Positions 7,314 to 62,176 of a DNA stretch of 64,000 bases are shown here, piece after piece (position 1 is the stretch's first letter; each line of letters starts with the position of its first letter). Under the pieces are notes generated by a model. The model was not told the origin of the DNA and ran no database searches. It worked only from the letters and a program-made list of their open reading frames with translations. The DNA lies in sequence record MF498774.1; one strand, given 5' to 3'. The position numbers were made by a program, and so were the translations under genes.

Positions 7314-8327
7314 ATGTCTAAGATGTTTAATGAGCTGTTTGAATCTATGACTCAAGCAGTCGCGATGAAGGCTCTTGGTTTGACTGGTAAGTTTACTGAT
7401 GACCAACTAAAGGCTGCATATCGCAAGGCAGCAAAGGATAACCACCCAGACCGTGGTGGTTCCACCGAAAAAATGCAGGCAGTAAACCAAGCTTACGAAG
7501 AACTGAAAAAATCCGGTTCTCCTGCAACCCAAGAAGCTACATGGGCACAGAGAAAACAGAAACAGGAAGAAGAGAAACACGTTGTAACTAACTTCGTGAC
7601 CCATATGTTTGACAAGTTTTTTGATACTCAGGCTTATCTCGACTACTTCCAAAAGATGAGCGGTAAAAAGTTCACATTTGAACGTAAAATTACCGTTGGT
7701 ACTTGGGGAACTTCTTCTGTCGATTATAAATTTACGTCGGAAGACCGTACAGTTTTCTTTGATCTGAATGCAATGGCTCATGTGTTTATCACCAAAGCTC
7801 TGGGTGCAGGTATTGATAAACCTGAGTTGGATAAGATGGGTGTTTTCACTGAGGTTCTGATTGACCGTAAAAAAGTAAAAATGACCCAAAGCAATTACAA
7901 CCAATCCGAAACTGAAAAGTTTATGAAGGATCCGAAAATCCTTTTCCCAGAAACCAAGCTAAAGAAAGCTTTTTCTGGTGATAAAAAGGTTAAACCGCTC
8001 AAGAAAGCCGATTATGTTCTTTTCGTCAAAAAAGAACTTGAAGGAAAACATTTGGGCGGTGATGATTTCGCAGTTGACATTGGTAACGGTTCCGTGATTT
8101 ATTTTTCTCGTATGACATGGATGCGAAAGGGTGTATGGAATATCAGTGGTCGTACAGGAACAAAAGAACGTTGGTCTGTAACTACTCCGTTCTATGAAAC
8201 TGAAACACCGGAAAACATGGATGTGATGAAAGAACTTGTACAGACTATGAAATCTCATAGTTCTTCTGGTGGTGCTCAGATGGAAGCTCTTGTCAAGAAA
8301 TTTATGTTGAAAGCTAACAAAGTTTAA
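7314..8327 (+). CDS. J-domain (DnaJ-like) protein
   Basis: LKAAYRKAAKDNHPDRGG..EKMQAVNQAYEEL with intact HPD; CCTAAATA upstream. Confidence 0.9.
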   Translation: MSKMFNELFESMTQAVAMKALGLTGKFTDDQLKAAYRKAAKDNHPDRGGSTEKMQAVNQAYEELKKSGSPATQEATWAQRKQKQEEEKHVVTNFVTHMFDKFFDTQAYLDYFQKMSGKKFTFERKITVGTWGTSSVDYKFTSEDRTVFFDLNAMAHVFITKALGAGIDKPELDKMGVFTEVLIDRKKVKMTQSNYNQSETEKFMKDPKILFPETKLKKAFSGDKKVKPLKKADYVLFVKKELEGKHLGGDDFAVDIGNGSVIYFSRMTWMRKGVWNISGRTGTKERWSVTTPFYETETPENMDVMKELVQTMKSHSSSGGAQMEALVKKFMLKANKV

Positions 8328-8388
8328 AATTAAAAACAGGAGATTATAGTGTTATAATCTCCTTATAAAATAACAAAAGGAAAGATAA

Positions 8389-8613
8389 ATGATTTTTATT
8401 GCTGATATTGTAGATCCGTCTGAATTTGGTGGTGCGTCTCGTACCGTTATTGACACCAAACTGATCAAAGGTCTCTCTGAGAAGAACGGTGTTTCTTATA
8501 TCACCTTTGATGTTCGTGGAACCGATAAGCAAAAAACGATTGCAGTCCATCAGGATTTCGAAGCAATTTTCTCATATATGCAGTTTGATGAACGGATCAA
8601 ACTTAGCCAGTAA
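8389..8613 (+). CDS. Hypothetical protein
   Basis: ORF with SD, followed by a terminator hairpin near 8624-8658. Confidence 0.7.
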   Translation: MIFIADIVDPSEFGGASRTVIDTKLIKGLSEKNGVSYITFDVRGTDKQKTIAVHQDFEAIFSYMQFDERIKLSQ

Positions 8614-8671
8614 AACGTATTAACACCCCTAGCGATTTTCGTTAGGGGTTTATTTTTTGATAGGATGGTTT

Positions 8672-8809
8672 ATGAAAGTAGTTCTTAAAAATGGTCAAGA
8701 AATCGAAGCGAAAGATGTAGTAAAATCAAAATACGATCACCTTGTTGTTACTGAACGTGCTGCATTTTGGATTGATAACAAAGAAATCAAAACCGTGGTT
8801 TGGTGGTGA
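8672..8809 (+). CDS. Small hypothetical protein (45 aa)
   Basis: Manual ORF MKVVLKNGQEIEAKDVV... Confidence 0.55.
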   Translation: MKVVLKNGQEIEAKDVVKSKYDHLVVTERAAFWIDNKEIKTVVWW

Positions 8810-8810
8810 T

Positions 8811-9800
8811 ATGGGTAGTTTTAATACTGTTTGTTCTGTTAGTCGTCAAATCGTTCAAGGTGGTGATAAAGTTCGCTTGATCCCAGTTGCTGGTAAACAC
8901 TGTATTAGTTCTTTCCCACTTACTGCGGTGTATGACGATTATGGTGAGTTTGACATTGATGATAATCTTGCGTTAGAATGCTTAATGAAAAACGTATCCA
9001 TGTTTAACGATGGTGTCTCTAAAGAGAACTTAGCCCATGGATTTTATCCATACGATGAAAATCGTTGGACAATCCCAGACCTATGGAGCAAAACAAAATA
9101 CGAGACTTCTTTTATTGTAGTAAAGTCTGATGTATACGATCTTGTTTCGGAGTTTGGTATTACTTGTTGGTGGGAGAAACCTGTATACGACGTTTCTGAT
9201 GCAGATGACTGGCTACCGGTAACACCGGAACGAGTCGCTAGACATCTTAAAACTCTCCAAGAAAGACTGAAAGAGTTGATCGAAGATAGCGAAGATCCAG
9301 AAGATGATATCCTTGTGAATCATGTTAAGATGATGGTTGATAATGTTCATATTGGTAATGCAAAACATTATGAACTTAGCAGATTGATGAAAACTCAAGA
9401 TCAGATTAATGATTATGCCCATCACGACGATACAACTTATGCAATTTTCAAAAATATTGAAGAATTTGCAAAATTAGAAAATTTTTATGCCGGTTGTAAT
9501 AACTTGGATATTGTGTTAACATCGCAGGAATATGGTCGTCAGACATGCAAACAGTTTGAAAAGGTTCGTATGATGACAAAAATCCAGATTACTGGATTTA
9601 ACCAAACAGAAAAAATTCAGTTGACTCCGGTTGAGTGGGATGTTAAGATTCCTTACTCTATGGTTATGGAATCAACTAAACCCAATTGGTCAAATGAAGT
9701 TGATTTGATTCGAGTTGGTAACTGTCTTGAAATTACGGACTCTAAATACAATGAGTTCAAAGAGTATAAACATGATGATGTCTATCTGAGTGAGAAATGA
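8811..9800 (+). CDS. Hypothetical phage protein
   Basis: Long ORF; likely start MGSFNTVCSVS at 8811. Confidence 0.75.
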   Translation: MGSFNTVCSVSRQIVQGGDKVRLIPVAGKHCISSFPLTAVYDDYGEFDIDDNLALECLMKNVSMFNDGVSKENLAHGFYPYDENRWTIPDLWSKTKYETSFIVVKSDVYDLVSEFGITCWWEKPVYDVSDADDWLPVTPERVARHLKTLQERLKELIEDSEDPEDDILVNHVKMMVDNVHIGNAKHYELSRLMKTQDQINDYAHHDDTTYAIFKNIEEFAKLENFYAGCNNLDIVLTSQEYGRQTCKQFEKVRMMTKIQITGFNQTEKIQLTPVEWDVKIPYSMVMESTKPNWSNEVDLIRVGNCLEITDSKYNEFKEYKHDDVYLSEK

Positions 9801-10050
9801 TATGAATTTTTTAGAATCAGAAAAAGTAACTTGGGGTGGAAGAATATACCCGCTAGATATAGCAAACCAAATATGTTCTGTTCAGCCTATAGACCCTGAG
9901 CCATTTCGAAAACTATATGAGCGGGCTAAAGAGAACGAACGTATTAAGAATCGGCTTTCTAAAGCTTTTATGGTCCCTGTATCAAGGATCGACGCATACT
10001 GTGTAGAAGCATATCGACTTGGTATAAAAGAAAGTAAAAATAAAAGTTAA
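9790..10050 (+). CDS. Hypothetical protein
   Basis: ORF overlapping the upstream stop. Confidence 0.55.
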   Translation: MRNDMNFLESEKVTWGGRIYPLDIANQICSVQPIDPEPFRKLYERAKENERIKNRLSKAFMVPVSRIDAYCVEAYRLGIKESKNKS

Positions 10051-10087
10051 ACATACTTTCTAACTGTGATATGATGTTTATATAAAT
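10039..10087 (+). promoter_or_regulatory. Sigma70-type promoter for tRNA-Leu(TAA)
   Basis: GTTAAACA...TGATATGAT; near-identical copy at 11198-11246. Confidence 0.75.
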
Positions 10088-10089
10088 GA

Positions 10090-10182
10090 GCGTGAGTGGC
10101 GAAGTTGGTTGAAACGCATCGGACTTAAAATCCGATACTGCATAATGGCACATCGTGGGTTCGATTCCCACCTCACGTACCA
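10090..10182 (+). tRNA. tRNA-Leu(TAA)
   Basis: Cloverleaf, TCGGA-CTTAAAA-TCCGA anticodon arm, long variable arm, GTTCGATT, encoded CCA. Confidence 0.95.
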
Positions 10183-10417
10183 AATACGAGATGATAAACT
10201 CAAATTACTTTTGTTGAATGAGCTTTTTGGACGTTATGTGAGTTTATCATCTCTCAAATTCAATATGAGATGCTTAATATGAACGTATACATCAGAAATT
10301 ACATGTGTGGAGTCCTTTGGGGTAGTATCTTCAACGAAGAACACTGTAAAGGTAAATGTGTAAAGATTATGCGCGGTAAACATTTGAAGCCTTTCTATCA
10401 AAAATCGAGATATTAAA

Positions 10418-10807
10418 ATGAAAGTGAAGCTTGGGGCTTACAACCTTAATGAAAAAAGTTCTTTGGTTAATACGAACGGATTAAAATTCATTTTGAATGA
10501 ACAAGTTATAGATGAATTTTCTAAAAAACTACCTGTTCTAATCAATTTTGGTCAAAAATGTTTTAACATTGATAATGCTAAAGATACTCCGGATCCGGTT
10601 GGTATTCTTAATTCCATAGAAACTTACAAGAAAGATAATATCATTATTGTTACTGGTGATGTAGAAATAACCAATGACAAAGTATATGATGTTCATGGGT
10701 GCCTTCCTTCTTTTTGTGTCCGATCTTTAGCTATTCGTAACGGTGATACTTACAAAGTTGGAGAAATTATTGCATGGGATATGGAAATATATGAAGGTTT
10801 ATCATGA
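10418..10807 (+). CDS. Hypothetical protein
   Basis: ORF track. Confidence 0.65.
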   Translation: MKVKLGAYNLNEKSSLVNTNGLKFILNEQVIDEFSKKLPVLINFGQKCFNIDNAKDTPDPVGILNSIETYKKDNIIIVTGDVEITNDKVYDVHGCLPSFCVRSLAIRNGDTYKVGEIIAWDMEIYEGLS

Positions 10808-11202
10808 ATAAACATGATATTCATCTCATTGGTATTAGTAAGTTTATCAAGAAAGGTCTTACTGTGGTTCAATCAAGTTTGATCTTCAAACAAACCAGTG
10901 AAGAATGGAAAAATATCCATGGTGTTGATGTAGACAAGATTTATTGCTATATTAACAACGAGGGAAAGGATATCTACGCAATTGGTAGACTTAGATCCTG
11001 TTGCGGACCTTGGTTGAGTGTTAGTTGTCGGTCTCTCCGTAAAAAAGGTTATATAGCATTTGACTTTAACGATGAAATTGAGATACCATATGGTTCAGGG
11101 ATGAAAACTGCTTATAGGGTATTGTTTTCTGACACCCCTAAATACGAGTATGATGAAGAAGCTAGACATCCAGTCGCTTACTTCGAAAAATACTTCAAAT
11201 AA
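10804..11202 (+). CDS. Hypothetical protein
   Basis: ORF track; ATGA overlap with the upstream gene. Confidence 0.7.
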   Translation: MNKHDIHLIGISKFIKKGLTVVQSSLIFKQTSEEWKNIHGVDVDKIYCYINNEGKDIYAIGRLRSCCGPWLSVSCRSLRKKGYIAFDFNDEIEIPYGSGMKTAYRVLFSDTPKYEYDEEARHPVAYFEKYFK

Positions 11203-11246
11203 AAGTTAAACATCCTTTCTAACTGTGATATGATGTTTATATAAAT
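11198..11246 (+). promoter_or_regulatory. Sigma70-type promoter for the main tRNA run
   Basis: One mismatch versus 10039-10087; ends 2 nt before tRNA-Arg. Confidence 0.75.
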
Positions 11247-11247
11247 T

Positions 11248-11324
11248 GCGCTGTTAGCTCAGTTGGATAGAGCAACGTTCTTCTAAAGCGTGGGTCACTG
11301 GTTCGAATCCAGTACGGCGCACCA
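11248..11324 (+). tRNA. tRNA-Arg(TCT)
   Basis: Cloverleaf, loop CTTCTAA, encoded CCA. Confidence 0.95.
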
Positions 11325-11408
11325 CGGGATGTGGTGAAATTGGCAGACACACTAGATTTAGGTTCTAGCGCCATAGGCGTGACGGTTCGAGTCCGTCCAT
11401 CCCGACCA
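11325..11408 (+). tRNA. tRNA-Leu(TAG)
   Basis: CTAGA-TTTAGGT-TCTAG anticodon arm, encoded CCA. Confidence 0.95.
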
Positions 11409-11409
11409 A

Positions 11410-11485
11410 GCGGGTAAGGTGTTTATGGATACATGCAAGCCTTCCAAGTTTGAGTAGACCGGATCGTTACCGGCTACCCGCTCCA
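11410..11485 (+). tRNA. Atypical tRNA-Gly(TCC)
   Basis: 76-nt cloverleaf, loop CTTCCAA, encoded CCA; A8, U14, T-loop ATCGTTA. Confidence 0.85.
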
Positions 11486-11496
11486 AGATTTAAAAT

Positions 11497-11566
11497 TGAT
11501 GTGTTACAGCTATCAGCTCACCGTTGAAAGAATACGGATAAGTCGGCTCGACTAAAGAACATATCA
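11497..11566 (+). ncRNA. Candidate 70-nt four-way-junction RNA
   Basis: 9-bp closing stem plus three short arms, between two tRNAs. Confidence 0.5.
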
Positions 11567-11569
11567 TTT

Positions 11570-11646
11570 GGCCCCTTAGCTCAGTTGGTTAGAGCAACCG
11601 ACTCATAATCGGTTGGTCACTGGTTCGAGTCCAGTAGGGGCCACCA
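11570..11646 (+). tRNA. tRNA-Ile2(CAT), ileX-like
   Basis: GGCCCCT acceptor stem and body like enterobacterial ileX; loop CTCATAA. Confidence 0.9.
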
Positions 11647-11668
11647 AATTTTTGATGAGAGCTATATT

Positions 11669-11863
11669 ATGTCTGGTATAAAATCCATAATTGAAAATTG
11701 GTCAGTTGGTGATGGTATAATCCATTGGAAGAATGGACGCCATAGTTTAGTAGTCTTTGGGTTTGCTCCAAATGGAGAACCTGCCTTTAAGTTTAAAGGT
11801 AAGAGTAAACTTACATCAGTAAGACAGATCGAAAAATCCATAGTTAATGCATATATTCTATAG
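11669..11863 (+). CDS. Hypothetical protein within the tRNA island
   Basis: 64-aa ORF with SD. Confidence 0.55.
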   Translation: MSGIKSIIENWSVGDGIIHWKNGRHSLVVFGFAPNGEPAFKFKGKSKLTSVRQIEKSIVNAYIL

Positions 11864-12020
11864 TTGTAAGCTCTCACGAATTTAATGGTCGTTGACCTTA
11901 CGATAATAATGAAGCGATACAGAGTCCCATCGCTTCTAAAAATATCAAAAGGGATGTTGATGCGCGTATGTAGCCGGGTTATAATGACCAAGATTCATGA
12001 AGGGTGAAAGACCACCCTAA
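11864..12020 (+). ncRNA. Candidate structured RNA
   Basis: Consecutive hairpins, including GAAGCGAT/ATCGCTTC (11911-11936). Confidence 0.35.
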
Positions 12021-12027
12021 ATATCAT

Positions 12028-12105
12028 AGCGGGGTGGAGAAGTCAGGAGTTCTCGCCAGACTCATTATCTGGAAATCGGTGGTTCAAATCCACCTCCCGC
12101 TTCCA
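12028..12105 (+). tRNA. tRNA-Met(CAT), initiator-like body
   Basis: AGCGGGGTGGAG start like fMet; CCAGA-CTCATTA-TCTGG arm; encoded CCA; CCTAAATA at 12016-12023. Confidence 0.9.
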
Positions 12106-12106
12106 A

Positions 12107-12182
12107 TGGCGTGTAGTTCAGTAGGTAGAACAGCGGACTGTTAATCCGTATGTCGTGGGTTCGAATCCCACCTCGCCAGCCA
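12107..12182 (+). tRNA. tRNA-Asn(GTT)
   Basis: GCGGA-CTGTTAA-TCCGT arm, encoded CCA. Confidence 0.95.
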
Positions 12183-12188
12183 AATTCT

Positions 12189-12279
12189 GGATGTTCGGCT
12201 ACGATGGCGGTGTAGCGGCGGACTGTAAATCCGTTCCCTCTGGGTAAACAAGTTGGTTCGAATCCAACAGCATCCACCA
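12189..12279 (+). tRNA. tRNA-Tyr(GTA)
   Basis: GCGGA-CTGTAAA-TCCGT arm, long variable arm, encoded CCA. Confidence 0.93.
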
Positions 12280-12282
12280 AAT

Positions 12283-12430
12283 AGAAGAAGTTAGAAGACG
12301 TTCTGATAAAATCCTCGGAGACGATGCCCCCTTGCGGTTTTAAACCGTTACGGATAAGCACGGGGTAATCCAAATCAACCATTATAGGGATGTGGTCATC
12401 TGGTATGTAAAATACAGTTGGTTTGGAACT
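12283..12430 (+). ncRNA. Candidate structured RNA of about 150 nt
   Basis: 11-bp stem 12369-12379/12417-12427 plus nested stems; no + strand ORF. Confidence 0.45.
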
Positions 12431-12433
12431 TTT

Positions 12434-12509
12434 CGGTGATTAGCGCAGTTGGTAGCGCGTCTGGTTTGGGACCAGAGGGTCACAGGTTCGAGTCCTGTAT
12501 CACCGACCA
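12434..12509 (+). tRNA. tRNA-Pro(TGG)
   Basis: TCTGG-TTTGGGA-CCAGA arm, encoded CCA. Confidence 0.95.
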
Positions 12510-12787
12510 CTTAGCACAAAGAACGGGTAACGACGTATGCCCCGGAATAAGCCAGCCATAGAGAATCTGGATATCCTGAAACGTGCCTTTAGGTTTCAGG
12601 CGGGATTGGTAGTATAAAGACGATATGGTAACTACTCCTTGACAAGCAGGGTTGAACTTGAGGTAACTGTCCTTTACCAAACAACGAACAGATGGACAAA
12701 ATCAGTTGAACGTCCTTCCTCCTTGTGATAGCATGTCAACTACATTAGGATATAATCACAGTCTAACGATCCTGATTATAATCCGCT
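12510..12787 (+). ncRNA. Candidate structured RNA of about 280 nt
   Basis: Multiple 5-8 bp stems, possible pseudoknot, no + strand ORF, between two tRNAs. Confidence 0.55.
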
Positions 12788-12863
12788 GCCGAATTAGCTC
12801 ATCTGGTAGAGCACAGCCTTTGTAACGCTGGGGTGGTCCGTTCGAGTCGGACATTCGGCACCA
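12788..12863 (+). tRNA. tRNA-Thr(TGT)
   Basis: Cloverleaf, loop TTTGTAA, encoded CCA. Confidence 0.93.
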
Positions 12864-25477: not shown

Positions 25478-25732
25478 TTAACACCGACACGGAATAAAAA
25501 GAAAACTCTCTTTTTGGTTAATAAAAACGGTTCCATCATTGATATAGATTGGATTTTTCTTTTCCTTATCTTCAATATCACAAACCGCGATTACATTTTC
25601 ATCATCGTCGATATGAAATACAATGAACCCATTCTTGAGAATTTCATAATTATAAAAATTACGTTCGCAACTGGTACGATATTCTTGAGCCGCTTCTACA
25701 GACCGAAAACGGTAAATGGTATCAAAGTTCAT
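25478..25732 (-). CDS. Hypothetical protein, divergent K[IV]RFK family member
   Basis: IYRFRSVEAAQEY...N. Confidence 0.55.
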   Translation of the reverse strand: MNFDTIYRFRSVEAAQEYRTSCERNFYNYEILKNGFIVFHIDDDENVIAVCDIEDKEKKNPIYINDGTVFINQKESFLFIPCRC

Positions 25733-25745
25733 ACGTGGGTATTGA

Positions 25746-26327
25746 TCATTTGGATACACTGAATGTCACCTTACCATTTTTAATGGAAATTTTGATTTCC
25801 ATATCTTGAGAAAGTTTACCTTGTGTGTTAACTAGATTGAAAATTGCTTGATCGAGTGGTGTCAACTGACAATTACCAATTTTTAGGTTACCTGTTATGT
25901 TAAGACCTTCGTCGTTTTTCTTCAAAGGTTTAGTTACATCCCCAGAAAATGTGGGTTTGTTCCCCTCGAACTTAGAAACGACTGGTGTTTTATTGAGAAT
26001 AATCTCATTACAGACCCCACCCATTAGTTCCTCATCACTAATCTGACGAGGTTTTGGGAGATCTTCAAGCTCAATCTCTTTATCAAGTGTAAAATATTTA
26101 TCAAATTCGTCATGGTCAATGGTATTGAATTCGTCTACCTTCAATACACCATTAACAATAAAACGGCTAATGTAACCGTCGCTATTAAGTCGGTTCAAGC
26201 TATCTTGGTTAACTGTCAGACGATAATCGACCAGATAATTTGAAACAATCCAATCATTAATTTTTGCTAGACCGATAAACTCTTTCCGGTCTTTTAGAGT
26301 TTTGAATTTATAAACAAAAGCTTTCAT
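25746..26327 (-). CDS. Hypothetical protein with K[IV]RFK family N-terminal domain
   Basis: VYKFKTLKDRKEF...IND.I. Confidence 0.65.
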   Translation of the reverse strand: MKAFVYKFKTLKDRKEFIGLAKINDWIVSNYLVDYRLTVNQDSLNRLNSDGYISRFIVNGVLKVDEFNTIDHDEFDKYFTLDKEIELEDLPKPRQISDEELMGGVCNEIILNKTPVVSKFEGNKPTFSGDVTKPLKKNDEGLNITGNLKIGNCQLTPLDQAIFNLVNTQGKLSQDMEIKISIKNGKVTFSVSK

Positions 26328-40848: not shown

Positions 40849-41334
40849 TTATTCCTCAATGTCAATAATAAAATTTGATGGGGTGATATTCGAGCCTACC
40901 GACTCAAGTTCTTTGTAAATATCACGTTCTCGAATCTTAAGCTGTTGTAGTTCTTTTGTCAACATACTTTCTTTACTTTTAATATGACTCTGAACGAATT
41001 TATCCTTGACATACTCAGATACTTCTGGGTCGTTCATAGCCCATTCCATCATCATAGTCTTTGTAAATTCCGGTTGTCCGCTCAAAGTAATTTCTTCTGA
41101 ATCAAGAAAAGATTCCATCTCAGTTTTGGTAAATGGCATTCTGTACCCCGGATGATAATTCACGGTTTTTCGATCTTCACTAATGACAACCGGTCGAAAG
41201 AGTTCATCCTCTTCAATAGTAAACCATTTGGGGTATTCACATACGGAAATGATACTATTGTACAAATTATCGTTATTGTTGATGACAAACAAATCCCAAG
41301 TGGCTTGACTTTTAAACTTATATTTCTTTTTCAT
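40849..41334 (-). CDS. K[IV]RFK family protein
   Basis: KKYKFKSQATWDLF...NDN. Confidence 0.65.
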   Translation of the reverse strand: MKKKYKFKSQATWDLFVINNNDNLYNSIISVCEYPKWFTIEEDELFRPVVISEDRKTVNYHPGYRMPFTKTEMESFLDSEEITLSGQPEFTKTMMMEWAMNDPEVSEYVKDKFVQSHIKSKESMLTKELQQLKIRERDIYKELESVGSNITPSNFIIDIEE

Positions 41335-52737: not shown

Positions 52738-53394
52738 CTAATCCTTCCAAAAATCTTTCTTACTCTCACGCTTTATACGCTCAACAACCATACCATTAAC
52801 CAACGCATTCAGTTTCTTAATAGTATCTTCACGACTCAATTTCTTTTTACGGATATTATAAAGTTTCCAGTACACAACCCAAGAAAGACATTTATCACAT
52901 CGAGTTATACCACCAAGACGAACCATTTGACATTTATCAAGAATAATATCAGCAGGATAATAGTTAAAACCAAAACCGTGATACTTCAACCATTCACGGA
53001 TAGAATCACGCTCGTTCTTAAACTTGTTTTCAGTGATATAAATGAACATCAAAAACCAAAACGTCAAGAGCCAAATAGCAACAACAACACCAATCACAAT
53101 ATATTCCATATCTTACTCCACGTAATCAATGCAGCACTTCAACACAGGAACCAACTCAGCTTCACTAGTCGGGTCTTCAAAGTCAACATTATCATAGCAA
53201 AGTTCTTCTGCGATAACAATAGAATGAATACCACGAACTAACGCAAAGTCACGCGCTACCTTTTCCAACTCACGGCCTTTGATAACCATCATAGCATTGT
53301 TATCAAGATACATACCAAAAACAGAAGTGATACCATAACCACGAGAGTTCAGTAGGGTTTTCATTTCAGCAGCAATTTCACGAATGTTTTTCAT
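52738..53394 (-). other. Two hypothetical genes (52738-53109 with TM, 53113-53394)
   Basis: ORF track. Confidence 0.65.
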
Positions 53395-53429
53395 ATCTAT
53401 CTCCAATCAGTCAGTAAGAACATGGTACT

Positions 53430-53665
53430 ACATCACCTAATGTGTGTCCACACTTTTTTGTTCTAGAATCAAACTTTTTAATTTAAGAACCAAACATTAT
53501 CAAAATATGAAAGAATGTTAACAGATATGAAAAGTTATGAAAATATGTGAAAGAATATTAACAGAATCCCTTATACCACAAGGGATAGAGAGAAAATGTT
53601 TTAAAATGGTGTATAAAAGAAAATGCACCAAAAAAGTGCATTTTACCCCTCTCACTATCGTTTGA
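53430..53665. other. AT-rich non-coding gap with direct and inverted repeats
   Basis: 17/18-nt direct repeat at 53508 and 53548; inverted repeats at 53566-53586 and 53620-53644. Confidence 0.6.
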
Positions 53666-53669
53666 TGAT

Positions 53670-54014
53670 TCAGCGGAACATTCGATTATATTCAGCGTGG
53701 TAAAGTTCCAAGCTACGTTCAAAAGCAGCTTTCTTTTCTTGTACATCGTCCCATAGTTCCCATAGAGCTTCAATGGTATTCATGGGATTGATATCATCTT
53801 CAACAATATCAAAATACTTCATTTCGCGTGAACTGATGAAAGCATAAAACCCATTGATGATTAGTTTTAATCCATCATTGGAGAGATACCAACCATGTTC
53901 ATTCTGGATTACTTCATGTGGTTCATTACCAATCTTAAACTCGATATCTTTATTAATATTGTCACACTGTCGGAACTCGTGTCGGGACTGTTCGTCTTTA
54001 AACTTAATCTTCAT
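53670..54014 (-). CDS. K[IV]RFK family protein with coiled-coil tail
   Basis: MKIKFKDEQSRHEF; true start 54014 with SD GGAG. Confidence 0.8.
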   Translation of the reverse strand: MKIKFKDEQSRHEFRQCDNINKDIEFKIGNEPHEVIQNEHGWYLSNDGLKLIINGFYAFISSREMKYFDIVEDDINPMNTIEALWELWDDVQEKKAAFERSLELYHAEYNRMFR

Positions 54015-54264
54015 AATGCATCTCCAAATATTGAGTTTCATCTTCAAAGAAGCAAGCATTCCATCCATTGTCTGGAACCGCTTTACCATACGTATTGAGA
54101 GTAATATTATTCCCTTTACTATCCACGAGTTCGATGCTTCCATCAAAGCACGTTTGAGCTTCATGGAAATCGTTACCCATGTATTCTGCGATAGACATAT
54201 TAGCTCGTCCGCCGGTGGTAAACTTGAACTTGGATTCGATATTTTTAAATCGCACTTTCATCAA
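54004..54264 (-). CDS. K[IV]RFK family protein
   Basis: MKVRFKNIESKFKF...ANMSIAEYMG. Confidence 0.8.
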   Translation of the reverse strand: MMKVRFKNIESKFKFTTGGRANMSIAEYMGNDFHEAQTCFDGSIELVDSKGNNITLNTYGKAVPDNGWNACFFEDETQYLEMHYED

Positions 54265-54616
54265 GCTTCTCCATTACTGCTTTGTTGTATTCAGTCATAG
54301 CATCATCATACTCTGCCTTCTTCTGTTGTGCGATATCCCAGAGTTCTTTGATAGATTTTTTCTTTTCAATCGGGAGAATATCCCATTCGAAAAATTGGTA
54401 TTCAGATGGGTGAATGAATGAGTCAACATCACCGTCATCAACCACCACTTCATTGTTGTTCTCATCTACCAGATACCAGCGACGACCATCAAATGAAACT
54501 CGATTCCAAACCATACCCATATGGTTTGCGATGTGGGTGTTTGCGTTTACACTACGGGATACAAAATGTTCTTTGTCCTTTTCGCTGAGGAAACGAATAC
54601 GCATAACATCTGTCAT
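54245..54616 (-). CDS. K[IV]RFK family protein with coiled-coil tail
   Basis: MRIRFLSEKDKEHF...ANTHIANHMG. Confidence 0.8.
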   Translation of the reverse strand: MTDVMRIRFLSEKDKEHFVSRSVNANTHIANHMGMVWNRVSFDGRRWYLVDENNNEVVVDDGDVDSFIHPSEYQFFEWDILPIEKKKSIKELWDIAQQKKAEYDDAMTEYNKAVMEKLDESAI

Positions 54617-54619
54617 AAT

Positions 54620-54853
54620 TTATTCTCCTTTATTATCTTGGGTTGGAACGAAATCTACTTCCCCATCAATGTACACGTTAAGAATACCTGAATCGTCTTC
54701 GTAAGTAAAGGCCAGATTTGAGTTGGTATTAGCAACCGACATTTCTACTTTGTGCCCAGTAGAGGAAAGACGTTCAACAGGGACAAAGAGGTTCTGTTGT
54801 GGATTGGTACAACCTTTATCAACGAATGTATTGTAGATAGTTCGAATATCCAT
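54620..54853 (-). CDS. Hypothetical protein
   Basis: ORF track. Confidence 0.65.
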   Translation of the reverse strand: MDIRTIYNTFVDKGCTNPQQNLFVPVERLSSTGHKVEMSVANTNSNLAFTYEDDSGILNVYIDGEVDFVPTQDNKGE

Positions 54854-54913
54854 TTAAATTTCCTTTTGATGACAACGGAACAAGTACCAATATACAGATA
54901 ACCTAATAGATGG

Positions 54914-55210
54914 TCAACTGTTTTCTTTAACCGATTGGATATAGTCGTTGAAAGCCTTGTCGTATTCGGCCTTCTTTTCTAACATGATATCGAAAAGGGT
55001 TTTGGGATCATCTTCAATCCAATCGAAGAAATCGTGTTCGGATTCAAGGATAAGAGTGCAATCAAGAATGTCGGTTTCGATATAGTAATGACCATGGATC
55101 TTAACTACTTCAACTGGGTGCATTCTCATAAAATCCGCGATTTCCAAATTTTCTACCGATGCAGCTTTAAAATCGCGTAGATGCTGTTCTGATTTAAAAC
55201 GGATCTTCAT
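54914..55210 (-). CDS. K[IV]RFK family protein with coiled-coil tail
   Basis: MKIRFKSEQHLRDF. Confidence 0.8.
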   Translation of the reverse strand: MKIRFKSEQHLRDFKAASVENLEIADFMRMHPVEVVKIHGHYYIETDILDCTLILESEHDFFDWIEDDPKTLFDIMLEKKAEYDKAFNDYIQSVKENS

Positions 55211-55213
55211 ATC

Positions 55214-55462
55214 TTATTCCCCTTCAATAACAAAGTAACGACGCTCACCCTTATGGATAACCGCATTCCACCCTTCAAACCCAGAGATATATGGATCTGG
55301 AATAGTGATACCACAATTATTATCATCTATCAGCCCAATATCCCCGCTACAATAATTGTATGCTTCGTGTGTATCCATTCCCATATAGTTTGCAATAGCA
55401 ACGTTAGCACGACAATTGGAGAAGTCCTGATGGGCTTGTTCATCTTTAAAACGAATCTTCAT
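55214..55462 (-). CDS. K[IV]RFK family protein
   Basis: MKIRFKDEQAHQDF...ANVAIANYMGMDTHEA. Confidence 0.8.
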   Translation of the reverse strand: MKIRFKDEQAHQDFSNCRANVAIANYMGMDTHEAYNYCSGDIGLIDDNNCGITIPDPYISGFEGWNAVIHKGERRYFVIEGE

Positions 55463-55465
55463 AAT

Positions 55466-55681
55466 TTATTCCTCAACAATAGTGAAGTAATGGCTTTCGT
55501 CTTCAATTTGGATAGTGAAATCTCCATCAATAGTATCCCAGAAATCACCGGTATCGTCAATCTCTACTTTGAAGGTTTTCATACCAAAATTCTTAACCAT
55601 GTTGTGGTTGTGGCGGTGGAAAGACGGATCCCGTTTAGAAAACTCTTCCATGGCTTTTTCATCTTTAAAACGAATCTTCAT
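55466..55681 (-). CDS. K[IV]RFK family protein
   Basis: MKIRFKDEKAMEEF. Confidence 0.8.
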   Translation of the reverse strand: MKIRFKDEKAMEEFSKRDPSFHRHNHNMVKNFGMKTFKVEIDDTGDFWDTIDGDFTIQIEDESHYFTIVEE

Positions 55682-56131
55682 TTACTTAATCTCCACCAGA
55701 CGCCACGGGATCATACCAATGGTGTAGAAGCACCAAGACATTGAGCTATCTTGGATATTGTAGATAGTACCATCATCCATCTCAATCACCGTAATCCCTT
55801 CGGTGTAGCCCGTCTTGAGGGTTTCTTTTACTGTGAAATAGTTACCAACTACCATCAGTGGAAACTCTGATTTCATGATAGGGCTTACTTCTTCGATGAT
55901 TTTGAATTTCTTGTTTAGCATATCTTTATTCCTCTAATAGTTGGCGAACAGTATTCACCCCTTGAATTCAATTCCGAAATCTCTCTTTAGTGCTACAATA
56001 GCCTTGCGCCTTACCTCACTAGTTGAACCACTTCGTGCTAATGATTCAAGGCCAATGATTCGTGAGTTTGCTGGATGACGGCCTTGGTCCCAGACGCTTT
56101 TTATGCTCGGAATGTGATTGGTCTTTGACAC
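55682..56131 (-). other. Two small hypothetical genes (55682-55921, 55955-56131)
   Basis: ORF track plus SD inspection. Confidence 0.6.
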
Positions 56132-56135
56132 TAAA

Positions 56136-56378
56136 TTATTCCTCAATGATAAAGAACTGTTGTTCACCTTGATGTACCTGTGCTTCCCACTGGTCGAATT
56201 CACCAACAGTGATTGGGTCGCCGTTAACGTCTACCAGAGCAATGATGGTCTTACCACACTCTTCATACGAAATGGCGTCATGGGTATCCATTCCCATATA
56301 TTCTGCAATAGCTGCATTTGCATCAGACATACACAAGAATTCATATTGGGCGTCGGTATCTTTGAAACGAATTTTCAT
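56136..56378 (-). CDS. K[IV]RFK family protein
   Basis: MKIRFKDTDAQYEF...ANAAIAEYMGMDTHDA. Confidence 0.8.
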   Translation of the reverse strand: MKIRFKDTDAQYEFLCMSDANAAIAEYMGMDTHDAISYEECGKTIIALVDVNGDPITVGEFDQWEAQVHQGEQQFFIIEE

Positions 56379-56379
56379 A

Positions 56380-58048
56380 CTAGCTCCTTAACAATCAACA
56401 CAAACATTATAAAACAGATTACCAGAGTAAACAACCCACCAATCCCACCATTTGCATCTTTTTTACCAGCCCATTCAGCAACATGAATAAGAAAGAGGCC
56501 GAGTGATACCAGAACCAAGGAAATGAGGATATTCATCATACTTCCAGACTATCCAGAGCTTCCCGTCGTTTAGCTTTTGCCTTTTCTTGTGTATGGTTAT
56601 TATAACGTTTAAGGGCTCGGTGTCGCGCATTATCCAGTGCTTTGATTTCTTTCTTGTTGTTATTGATATCGAAAATCTCAATACATGTAGTTCCGCCATT
56701 GGTATTGGATTTGTTAAGGAAAATACTGCGGGGTTTTCCTTCGGCATCACAACTAAAACCAAGATGAAAACCTTCAAAGAAAACAGTCCGTGGCGTATCA
56801 CCAAAGATATCCCCAGTCGGATGGGTATCCATATACTGTACCATGGCAGCGGCTTTAGGGTCGATTTTACGGAAGAATGAGAACATAATAAGCTCCTTAG
56901 TGAACCAGAGTTTTTGCTTTCTTGGTGATGATGGTAACGGCCTTGCAACCGTTCTTGCGAACACCACGACCGACAGACAGGGTTTTGTTCCCGGTAGAGT
57001 TCACATCGACAGTACGAGCCCAACGATTGGTGGCCTGAGTACCGTTGTCAGTCATTTTACCAAAACCAGCAACACGAGCAGCGGAACGAGTGGCGAAGAA
57101 GATTTGTGCAGTCATGATGATTTCCTTTTTCAAGAGAGGGTTTCTGTCTACGGGATTAGTATCTCAAAACACGCTTTCGGAGTCAACTATTTATTTTGTT
57201 TTCTTTGCAATTGCCCAAGCTGCTTTGAACTCGTCTACCATATCAACTGGGATCATGTAACCACAACCAATACCCTCGTCATAGAGTGGGCACATATCGG
57301 AATGGTCTCGCCAAGTGAGAACACGACCGTCACCGCGAATCCCTATTTCCATAGCATCGATAACAGCCTCAACGCGAGCAATACGATCCCCATCTTTATC
57401 GTGAATGGAAAATGCCCAGTTACCACGATATTCAGAACCAAGGTTAATTGCGTCACGTTGGAGTTTCATATTAATTCCTTTTGAGTTCGTTTCAACAAGG
57501 ACATTATTACATTACCAGATTATGGGGTCAATCAGTTTTTCAAAAGATTTTTGATTTCTTCCATCTCATCTTTCAGATCGCTAATCCAATATTGAGCAGG
57601 GAAGCAATTCAGGAACTCCATATAAGCCCGGATAACCTCGATGCATTCTTCTACATCACCGAGATAAATCATTTCGCAAGCCCAGTCATAATCGACACCA
57701 TAAACGGTTTGGGCTGCATCATACACTTCATCAGTGATATTGTTCTCAGCAACGTTGATAACTTTTTTGGCAAGGGAAACGACGTAGTTCATGATAACAC
57801 CTCTCTCGATTCGATATTTAAACCATATCCACTTCGACAGTAGAGAAATTCAGAATGGAAAGTCCATACCCATTATCACCGGTAATCACTGGCTTCATAT
57901 ACAGAGGGAATTCGCTTTCTTCGTAATCCCGACCCATAAAACTCCGATCACAGAAATTGTGCTCTTTCATAATCAGGGTGGAGAACTTATCAAACTCTTC
58001 CACAGAAGAAATCAAGGTATAACCAATTTTAGTCATGAACTCTTTCAT
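56380..58048 (-). other. Six small early genes (about 56380-56538 with TM, 56536-56886, 56897-57115, 57191-57469, 57532-57792, 57818-58048)
   Basis: ORFs with SDs; duplicated 24-bp leader at 57794-57817 and 58050-58073. Confidence 0.7.
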
Positions 58049-58107: not shown

Positions 58108-58587
58108 TCAATTCCGAAAAATATTTTCCATTTCTTGTACTGTCATACCAGCTTTATTAGCAATTTCCTGTTTCTTGAGGCGCTTATCAATTTGAGCTTG
58201 AACGGATTCATTCATCTTAACTTCGTTGATGGACACATACAACTCACCATCAACACGGATAAACGGAACTTCCGCCATAGGGGTTTTGTTGGTGATAGAA
58301 TAGTGTTCTGCAACCTTCTCATCAGTGGTTGTAACAGCGCCATATCCGTTCGCAATCAACCAAGCTTTTTCTTCAATGACAACTTCGAAATAAGAGACGC
58401 TTTCGATGATGGTCAGATAGTCCTTACCAAACGAGTAATCCCGTGTGTAATAACCATCATACTTAGTTTCCTTCTGCCAATTAGCACCATTCTCAATGGC
58501 GTCAATGACTTTCTTGCCCCATTCAGTCAATCCAAAACGAGAAATGAATTTGGAGCGGATAATAGGTGATTTGAATTTCAGTTTCAT
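58108..58587 (-). CDS. K[IV]RFK family protein with C-terminal extension
   Basis: MKLKFKSPIIRSKF...SYFEVVIEE. Confidence 0.7.
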   Translation of the reverse strand: MKLKFKSPIIRSKFISRFGLTEWGKKVIDAIENGANWQKETKYDGYYTRDYSFGKDYLTIIESVSYFEVVIEEKAWLIANGYGAVTTTDEKVAEHYSITNKTPMAEVPFIRVDGELYVSINEVKMNESVQAQIDKRLKKQEIANKAGMTVQEMENIFRN

Positions 58588-59237: not shown

Positions 59238-59912
59238 TTATTTTATCCGACAAATCAATCTCTTATAAACAAACGCCTTATCTTTACAGTGTTTATTGTT
59301 ACTTATTATCTTTTCAATAGAAAACGTGATACCCAGAGGTAATAAAAATTCCATCTCGGATTTGAAAGAAGATTCTTTGTCTTTTAAAACTGTGCAAACT
59401 GGAATGGCCTTCATATCGTTAACATAGAACTCAATTTGAATTTTTACATTATCATCTCGCATCCCATCAACTGGCTTAAACGGTACTGGGTTTATTGATG
59501 TGGAACAAAACCCAAGATTCGTTATCTCTTTCTTTTTCAGCACTTCTTTCCACTGAGATTTAGATAGGTATATAGTTCTATACAATCTAGCGGATATAGT
59601 ACAAGAACGGTCTATCACGTCCTGCATTTTTCTAATGTATTCGTTGACATCTTCCGCTGATGGATTTAGATCTGGTGATAATTCTTCACCACAAAGAAAC
59701 TTATTTGTATTGATATAGTAGTCTAGAGCATAGTTTTCGATCAGTTCTTTGTCTTCTTTCGTATATGACGATATATCAATATTGTCAAATGCAGATGCCA
59801 TAATACTTCTATAATTATACGAAGATGAAGACCTAATCTTTACTATGTCTTCATCAGAAAAAAGATTCATAATGTTAACTGTCGTTTCGTCATTATTTTC
59901 GTTTGCATTCAT
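59238..59912 (-). CDS. NAD:arginine ADP-ribosyltransferase (Alt/Mod/VIP2-like fold)
   Basis: LYR, GFCSTS and SEMEFLLP form the R-STS-ExE triad. Confidence 0.85.
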   Translation of the reverse strand: MNANENNDETTVNIMNLFSDEDIVKIRSSSSYNYRSIMASAFDNIDISSYTKEDKELIENYALDYYINTNKFLCGEELSPDLNPSAEDVNEYIRKMQDVIDRSCTISARLYRTIYLSKSQWKEVLKKKEITNLGFCSTSINPVPFKPVDGMRDDNVKIQIEFYVNDMKAIPVCTVLKDKESSFKSEMEFLLPLGITFSIEKIISNNKHCKDKAFVYKRLICRIK

Positions 59913-61957: not shown

Positions 61958-62176
61958 CTACGATGCAACAACTATTTCAAAATAAATTCCTTCACCAGTT
62001 TTATGGATAGTGAAATCGCCATCAACTGTATCCCACCAAGATTCGGTAATATCAACCTCAACCTCGAAAGGGTTCATACCATGACGAAGAACCAGATCTT
62101 TATTGTGGGAAGACCAACCAAGATTGATATTTGCGAACTCGTTCATATGTGCTTCGGATTTGAATTTGATTTTCAT
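61958..62176 (-). CDS. K[IV]RFK family protein (close to 55466-55681)
   Basis: MKIKFKSEAHMNEF...WDTVDGDFTI. Confidence 0.8.
   Translation of the reverse strand: MKIKFKSEAHMNEFANINLGWSSHNKDLVLRHGMNPFEVEVDITESWWDTVDGDFTIHKTGEGIYFEIVVAS

Follow-up and report, generated by a model that had tools for sequence, protein, structure and literature searches.

A probably ancient array of small acidic GoF-like paralogues in the Aeromonas phage AS-yj

The early protein GoF of bacteriophage T4 has remained unsolved for about 45 years, and the functional data on it come only from mutants that alter mRNA stability. GoF is abundant (approximately 20,000 copies per cell) and non-essential, and it shares an N-terminal “LSm-like” beta domain with MotB.1 as well as Frd.2 of T4, the C-terminal parts being variable (Kim et al., PMC12152347). 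Three family members have been reported for T4, and a gene 41 leader-reporter mRNA, on which wild-type GoF and MotB.1 have little effect, has an increased half-life with the GoF mutant D25Y (PMC12152347). Genetically, T4 GoF is tied to Rho and to mRNA stability; changes in mRNA level or stability and the suppression of rho-mutant restriction are known from T4 GoF mutants only. Aeromonas phages, paralogue arrays and acidity are not mentioned in the study of Kim et al. (PMC12152347). Here we analyse a cluster of seven small paralogous genes at positions 53,670 to 56,378 of a 64,000-nucleotide stretch of the T4-like Aeromonas phage AS-yj, together with an eighth, dispersed copy; these genes very likely belong to the GoF-domain family.

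The stretch, termed “the window” throughout, comprises bases 62001-126000 of record MF498774.1 (230,183 bp), and positions refer to the window unless the record is named. AS-yj is classified in the genus Ceceduovirus (Straboviridae, Emmerichvirinae). On balance, and with moderate confidence, we favour the view that the cluster is an ancient array of GoF-domain paralogues encoding early, acidic binding modules. No new kind of system is revealed; what is new is how far the family has expanded, its minimal form of a single domain, the connection of PHROG 3089 with GoF, the existence of tandem-domain relatives and the association with PinA.

The paralogue family and its link to T4 GoF

Eight genes, namely the seven near-tandem ones and the dispersed copy at 61958, constitute a true paralogue family. 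A core profile built from these eight best members and searched over the 454 open reading frames (ORFs) of the window retrieves exactly its eight genes (E 1e-18 to 3e-41), and the best non-member ORF scores at E 0.012. An earlier reading of the window from its letters only (the sequence-only reading) had listed 12 genes as members, seven near-tandem and five dispersed. All 12 are present as ORFs, and all lie on the minus strand. Of this count, the seven near-tandem genes and 61958 are solid and a gene at 25746 is supported, while 25478 is borderline, 58108 is a possible member and 40849 drops out.

Three members combine the domain with a helical tail. The last gene of the cluster (53670..54014, 114 amino acids (aa)) carries a GoF-like domain at approximately residues 1-73 followed by the tail (profile E 5.7e-38; PHROG 2980, 2.3e-21; tail profile, 1.3e-17). 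The product of 54245..54616 (123 aa) has four additional N-terminal residues before domain and tail (2.9e-41, 1e-21 and 1.2e-21, respectively), and that of 54914..55210 (98 aa) has the shortest domain (9.9e-37, 1.6e-20 and 1.1e-17). The common tail had already been noticed in the sequence-only reading; searched over the whole AS-yj genome, a profile of the tail picks out these three genes and no others (E 1e-17 to 1e-21).

The other five members are bare domains, which fall into the two subfamilies proposed earlier. PHROG 3089 unites 54004..54261 (85 aa, with an 11-nt overlap with the next gene; profile E 1.4e-28; PHROG 3089, 1.2e-29), 55214..55462 (82 aa; 1.7e-29 and 1.9e-28) and 56136..56378 (80 aa; 1.8e-27 and 1.9e-29), the last of which is the most acidic copy of the window, with an isoelectric point (pI) of 4.08. 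The “WDT..DGDFTI” subfamily consists of 55466..55681 (71 aa; profile E 1.6e-18; PHROG 2980, 2.3e-19) and the dispersed 61958..62176 (72 aa; 1.8e-18 and 6e-25). PHROG 2980 is the best match of both, and RefSeq orthologues of 61958 are named goF.

The motif that defines the family is well preserved: in an alignment of 19 sequences, M1, F5, F14 and N21 never vary, and K6, G29 and E64 are each retained by 90% or more. The earlier description of a conserved scaffold with a variable middle likewise stands, as the share of the top residue is 0.79 over residues 1-7 versus 0.32 over residues 31-58. Most of the 90 listed insertion columns fall in the middle, behind the second helix and ahead of the last strands. 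The members are 69-123 aa long and acidic, with a pI of 4.1-5.0 and, in the core members, a net charge of -6 to -13. Codons of the N-terminal motif differ between copies, so that the motif is conserved as protein; a conserved DNA or regulatory cassette was rejected, since the codons vary and the upstream regions share only the ribosome-binding site.

Over the full profile length, all eight members match PHROG 2980 (“goF mRNA metabolism modulator”) and/or PHROG 3089 (“unknown function”) at E 1e-19 to 1e-30. PHROG 2980 is the best match for five and PHROG 3089 for three, and all eight cross-match the other profile (1e-11 to 0.02). In the RefSeq versions of the phages AS-sw, CC2 and AS-zj, several orthologues are already called goF. 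T4 GoF itself matches PHROG 2980 with residues 11-91 over the full profile (5.5e-6), and our own profile at 8e-6, a value that improves to 7e-8 over iterations without T4 GoF ever being included. In hhalign, T4 GoF aligns with the family at a probability of 88.8% over 34 columns. Because of these PHROG, profile and hhalign matches, we regard the window family as a sub-branch of the GoF N-terminal-domain superfamily.

The C-terminal half typical of GoF is missing: five of the eight members stop at the domain, and the tails of the other three have no match in T4 GoF, MotB.1 or Frd.2. The genes are therefore members of a domain family and not orthologues of GoF. Pfam, NCBIfam and PDB sequence searches of the members yielded nothing meaningful, and neither Pfam nor NCBIfam holds a model of the domain. 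PF03197 (FRD2) has no match among the members tested from the window or from AS-yj, while T4 Frd.2 itself reaches 133 bits. The sequence-only reading had named a known housekeeping role of the family as a ground for its own refutation. That ground applies in part, since the family is already known (as GoF-like; PHROG 2980, RefSeq names, PMC12152347), although no housekeeping role of it is.

The more distant candidates of the window, all on the minus strand, were scored with a broad profile of 71 sequences, comprising the window members and matches from two large protein searches. Iterated profiles inflate the E-values of included sequences by construction, and the values cited here are those before inclusion. 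The gene at 25746..26327 (193 aa) is supported as a divergent member by E-values of 3.3e-5 (454 ORFs) and 1.2e-4 (1700 ORFs) and by an alignment across the whole domain. Its GoF-like domain occupies approximately residues 5-85, followed by a long unrelated C-terminal part, and the protein has a PHROG of its own (18353). The gene at 25478..25759 (93 aa) is a borderline case, with a broad-profile E of 1.2e-3 to 4.6e-3 and weak matches to phrog_8944 (“goF”, 0.0066) and to phrog_622, the PHROG of T4 GoF (0.023).

At 58108..58587 (159 aa), a very divergent member is possible. The broad profile scores this gene at E 0.09-0.4, and hhalign with an alignment of its orthologues covers residues 1-16 only (probability 78-85%). 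An AlphaFold2 (AF2) model from five orthologues is of low confidence (predicted local distance difference test (pLDDT) 60.6); its first 70 residues form a strand, two helices and strands in the order seen in the family model, and weak Foldseek matches link it to BFVD entries also matched by the family model. The gene at 40849..41334 (161 aa) was rejected as a member by profile-profile comparison (hhalign probability <3%) and by a broad-profile E >1. Its sole link to the family is indirect and runs through phrog_8464 (1.8e-5), which T4 GoF and four members also match weakly.

Copies of the domain are not confined to the window. The rest of the AS-yj genome was fetched and all ORFs were scanned with the profile, which revealed three further strong copies 1-2 kb past the window end (record 127009-128061). 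AS-yj thus harbours 11 strong and approximately 5-7 divergent copies in total, as opposed to the three reported for T4. Among the moderate copies, one (record 163672-163893, minus strand; no Pfam FRD2 match) adjoins the dihydrofolate reductase gene frd, as does frd.2 in T4, and another (record 196316-196603) lies between rIIA and the large topoisomerase gene. A third is located within the baseplate module (record 56600-56965, plus strand; E 4.2e-10), on the opposite strand and at an odd location for an early-type gene. Weaker matches were found at record 138310-138573 and 196603-196875.

Outside AS-yj, tblastn with single members as query reaches only Aeromonas phages, and a word-indexed protein search only close relatives. 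An exhaustive search of 1.84 billion representative proteins returned 53 clusters at E <=0.001, of which approximately 46 are genuine small proteins; the other approximately seven, long repeat-rich proteins, were set aside as spurious. With only 53 clusters, the subtype is therefore narrow at this similarity level. Genomes and contigs of relatives were scanned with our own family profile. Aeromonas phage Aswh_1 (MH791414.1, 9986-15305) has four copies spread over no more than 20 kb, with three PinA-like paralogues (PF10465) interspersed among them. On a T4-like contig of metagenomic origin (Logan SRR14300940, 71 kb; positions 7920-12690), four neighbouring genes encode proteins of 250-354 aa, each of which has a tandem of two or three GoF-like domains.

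The predicted fold and a possible role as RNA chaperones

The AF2 model of residues 1-76 of the 53670 product has a pLDDT of 92.4. It predicts a strand (residues 2-5), two helices (8-17 and 19-28), two further strands (33-38 and 41-46), a short strand (59-61), a short helix (62-67) and a last strand (68-71). Independent BFVD models of other subfamily members superimpose on it with template modelling (TM) scores of 0.75-0.87, among them the model of the 54245 product (A0A291LEP1; TM 0.80, root-mean-square deviation 1.6). The model also matches a protein of phage VR7 named GoF (TM 0.67, E 1.3e-2) and the BFVD model of PHG31ORF236c, whose RefSeq name is goF. Many further BFVD matches of 68-274 residues come from T4-like phages of Escherichia, Pectobacterium, Yersinia, Erwinia, Proteus, Morganella and Klebsiella. 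Given these matches, the core members are not structurally unrelated beyond the N-terminal motif, and the family holds at the level of structure, too.

Searched against the PDB with Foldseek, the model finds nothing at E <=0.001. The best matches are SH3 domains (E ~1, TM ~0.3), the top 50 include neither Hfq nor an Sm protein, and there is no Pfam LSM match. Without a significant match in the PDB, neither “LSm” nor “SH3” was adopted as a label for the domain.

These results bear on the proposal, put forward for T4 GoF, that such proteins act as RNA-binding chaperones of the LSm/Hfq type, the different copies stabilising different phage or host transcripts. Two details would suit it. In our profile, D25 of T4 GoF, the residue changed in the D25Y mutant, is aligned four residues before the invariant asparagine of the family. 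Moreover, strand geometry suggests that K2, R/K4 and K6 of the first strand share one face, with residues 3 and 5 pointing toward the core. The lack of Hfq, Sm or LSM matches speaks against the proposal, as does the strongly acidic nature of the core members: Sm/LSm/Hfq chaperones are basic, and direct RNA chaperoning of the Hfq type is less likely because the AS-yj proteins are acidic. Furthermore, the reporter effect belongs to the D25Y variant, a presumed gain-of-function mutant, rather than to the wild-type protein, and AlphaFold3 yields no confident homo-oligomers for T4 GoF (PMC12152347). Taken together, we consider it improbable that the copies are RNA chaperones of this type.

Age, selection and transcription of the array

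The paralogues share only 21-38% protein identity. DNA repeats within the cluster are limited to 47-48 nt at 67-81% identity and lie over the two most conserved motifs; long repeats are absent. Twelve other Ceceduovirus records span at least 80% of window positions 53000-57000 at 84-96% identity. In CC2, the most distant member of the genus sampled, all seven genes recur in unchanged order, and 61958 has an orthologue as well. Seven copies in this order are also found in AS-yj, AS-sw and P19. In AS-zj the cluster comprises six, the 55466 copy being missing, and AP1 has seven, one of them truncated, in a changed order.

The ratio of non-synonymous to synonymous substitution rates (dN/dS) is 0.07-0.43 for all eight orthologue pairs between AS-yj and CC2. 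Individual values are 0.43 for 53670, 0.29 for 54004, 0.20 for 55214 and 0.07 for both 54914 and 56136, the latter with a dS of 1.58. At 68-91%, the amino-acid identity of the pairs is somewhat below that of most neighbours. Within the cluster dS is uneven (0.35-1.58), and many neighbouring genes show 0.11-0.46, which suggests a mosaic history of exchange. A 117-aa relative from the representative search (P0047) is a chimera of a 53670-type domain and a 54245-type tail and suggests recombination between paralogues.

Genomic accordions are recent tandem gene amplifications, such as that of poxvirus K3L, in which the copies are near-identical and their number varies between close isolates. The sequence-only reading had called the family “accordion-like”, a term that does not apply here: the copies are diverged and without long DNA repeats, the cluster is syntenic in CC2, AS-sw and P19, and all eight genes have CC2 orthologues. 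Divergence, synteny and dN/dS therefore indicate an old array that is kept by purifying selection and subject to minor flux only, and we consider such a stable array, rather than an accordion, likely.

The same data bear on the idea that the copies are functionless filler ORFs drifting in a hyperplastic region. T4 goF lies within 11 kb of DNA whose deletion causes no growth defect in the laboratory, and most genes next to the AS-yj cluster are uncharacterised, as might be expected of filler. Yet the selection data render this idea hardly credible. Apart from the one truncated copy, the reading frames are intact in six phages, all eight genes have dN/dS values of 0.07-0.43, a six-frame scan of the window found no pseudogene remnants, and the motif is maintained as protein with differing codons.

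Selection also informs the proposal of the sequence-only reading that the copies form an anti-defence arsenal, each directed against a different host immune system. The proteins do look the part, since they are small, acidic, early, seemingly non-essential, multi-copy and diversified on one surface, and some gain, loss and reordering of the cluster among close phages, along with the uneven dS suggestive of exchange, would fit as well. However, the array is largely fixed across the genus under purifying selection instead of turning over fast, and the genetics of T4 GoF point to Rho and mRNA, not to immunity. Pfam, NCBIfam, the PDB and PHROG names revealed no similarity to characterised anti-defence proteins; a dedicated anti-defence library was not searched. 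An anti-defence role of the array is thus an idea to which we give little credence.

From approximately 18 kb to its end, the window consists of a succession of small minus-strand genes. The same run carries genes for a topoisomerase II subunit, a DNA methyltransferase and an Alt/Mod-like ADP-ribosyltransferase, a set that is the usual make-up of a T4-like early region. The ADP-ribosyltransferase gene (59238-59912, minus strand; phrog_802 at 8e-15) has no counterpart in the CC2 and AS-sw stretches compared. Elsewhere in the window, ten tRNA genes (Leu x2, Arg, Gly, Met x2, Asn, Tyr, Pro and Thr) are clustered on the plus strand at 10090-12863.

Within the cluster, the spacing of successive genes runs from -17 (an overlap) to +3 nt, save for one gap of 60 nt and one of 214 nt. 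On the minus strand of window 45-64 kb, 17 intergenic gaps measure 40 nt or more, and 10 of them hold a sigma-70-type promoter (at least 9 of 12 consensus positions) with a TTGAC-type -35 box, compared with 15% of random windows of the same lengths (p = 3.7e-5). For eight of these promoters, the distance from the end of the -10 box to the next start codon is 27-42 nt. One of the promoters, with 10 of 12 consensus positions and a 17-nt spacer (54889..54917, minus strand), is situated in the 60-nt gap, 35 nt upstream of the gene at 54620..54853 (minus strand), an interspersed non-member of 77 aa that matches phrog_14361 and has no family-profile match. The last gene of the cluster is directly followed by a terminator-like hairpin with a T-run behind it (53620..53644, minus strand). 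The early “host-takeover” setting envisaged in the sequence-only reading fits these small, tightly packed minus-strand genes with their enriched promoters. Promoter enrichment and the terminator-like hairpin make early transcription by the host polymerase likely, and early expression of the family genes appears probable.

A second non-member inside the cluster, at 55682..55921 (minus strand, 79 aa), abuts the 55466 gene without a spacer and resembles the N-terminal part of PinA at half its size (PF10465, Inhibitor_I24, 5.3e-10, above the Pfam cut-off; phrog_2167, 2.8e-11). In phrog_32533, this gene matches positions 1-86 and the family members match positions 91-159, so that the PHROG appears to be a PinA-like half fused to a GoF-like half.

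The 214-nt gap (55922-56135) contains an unannotated ORF of 58 aa (55955..56131, minus strand) with a GTG start, a GAGGA sequence 8 nt upstream and a pI of ~11. The stretch is conserved at 95-100% nucleotide identity in 13 Ceceduovirus records and annotated in none of them, whereas the flanking genes are far more diverged from CC2. Between AS-yj and CC2, the ORF differs by seven synonymous codons and one non-synonymous codon. Neither the ORF nor the gap has a PHROG, Pfam, tRNA or Rfam match. An RNA gene at this site was rejected in view of the missing tRNA and Rfam matches and the conserved ORF found there instead.

The tight coupling of the genes raises the question of whether the seven co-transcribed paralogues are subunits of one hetero-oligomer, a phage analogue of the seven-membered Sm/LSm ring acting on RNA early in infection. 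The paralogues would then not be independent effectors. Other phages would carry two or three of the subunits as domains of one chain, and the basic 58-aa ORF could encode a partner. That seven neighbouring, co-oriented and tightly coupled paralogues have stayed together throughout the genus would suit such a complex; four adjacent genes with two or three domains per polypeptide in another T4-like contig would agree with it, and T4 GoF and MotB.1 run partly as dimers (PMC12152347). A ring of seven is difficult to reconcile, however, with the copy missing in AS-zj, the truncated copy in AP1, the additional copies scattered over the genome and the absence of a match to an Sm-type fold in the Foldseek search of the PDB. 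We therefore regard a hetero-oligomer of this kind as very improbable.

Proposed explanation and comparison with known systems

According to the explanation that we favour, the array would have arisen by old tandem duplications, followed by divergence, some exchange of modules (as reflected by the shared tail and the chimeric relative) and, now and then, loss or a change of order. Purifying selection maintains each copy, and the array is genus-wide. The host polymerase probably transcribes the genes from sigma-70-type promoters as tightly coupled units. Each product may act as a small binding module, with a common scaffold built from the conserved strand at the N-terminus, the helical hairpin and the strand at the C-terminus; the partner of each copy would be set by a variable beta-hairpin region whose length varies by up to ~20 residues. 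As partners we envisage components, of the host or of the phage, that take part in RNA or protein turnover, which would fit the tie of T4 GoF to Rho and mRNA stability and the repeated adjacency or fusion of PinA-like domains to family members. This last element, namely that the copies are modules binding different targets within RNA or protein turnover, is tentative and, on its own, rather doubtful.

Several observations weigh against parts of this explanation. The link to T4 GoF consists of moderate E-values, and the residue-level alignment is confident only in the first half of the domain. The early timing is drawn from promoter-like sites only, and a region-wide promoter scan shows no enrichment (44 found versus 37 expected). 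The association with PinA is deduced from adjacency and PHROG profile coordinates, not from an inspected fusion protein. Finally, wild-type T4 GoF has no clear effect in the published reporter assays (PMC12152347).

For work on GoF, the genus Ceceduovirus offers a core domain of 70-85 residues, at least 11 diverged and selected copies per genome, a defined variable region and natural fusions, both of several domains in tandem and of PinA-like with GoF-like parts. The array amounts to a natural “mutational scan” of the domain, and it provides small targets for structure determination and a route to the surface that carries specificity. As PHROG 3089, hitherto of “unknown function”, is tied to the GoF superfamily, database names could be harmonised.

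Compared with known systems, the array resembles genomic accordions in being a tandem array of one gene family in a virus genome, and differs from them in that its copies are diverged, devoid of long repeats and orthologous across the genus. Sm proteins have a single N-terminal helix, in contrast to the strand and two helices that precede the sheet in the family model. T4 PinA, a Lon protease inhibitor (PF10465), is connected to the family by neighbourhood and fusion, through the PinA-like gene in the cluster; the family profile does not detect PinA-like proteins, and the connection is not one of homology. MotB.1 and Frd.2 (PF03197) of T4, grouped with GoF by Kim et al. (PMC12152347), are detected by our profile in neither case (E 0.19-0.54 and 13-21, respectively). 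In T4 frd.2 is located beside frd, as is a family copy in AS-yj, and the kinship with MotB.1 and Frd.2 would be structural only.

The closest described relative is T4 GoF (ComC-alpha, 141 aa), with which the window family shares a homologous N-terminal domain, an early-type setting near topoisomerase II genes and the acidity of the whole protein. The two are assigned to different PHROGs, 622 for T4 GoF and 2980 or 3089 for the window members, and the first 80 residues of T4 GoF have a net charge of +2, as opposed to -4 to -13 in the AS-yj members. Most of the latter consist of the bare domain of 69-85 aa without the C-terminal half of GoF, and the tails, where present, are unrelated to it. T4 has one GoF, while AS-yj carries 11 close copies of its own subtype.

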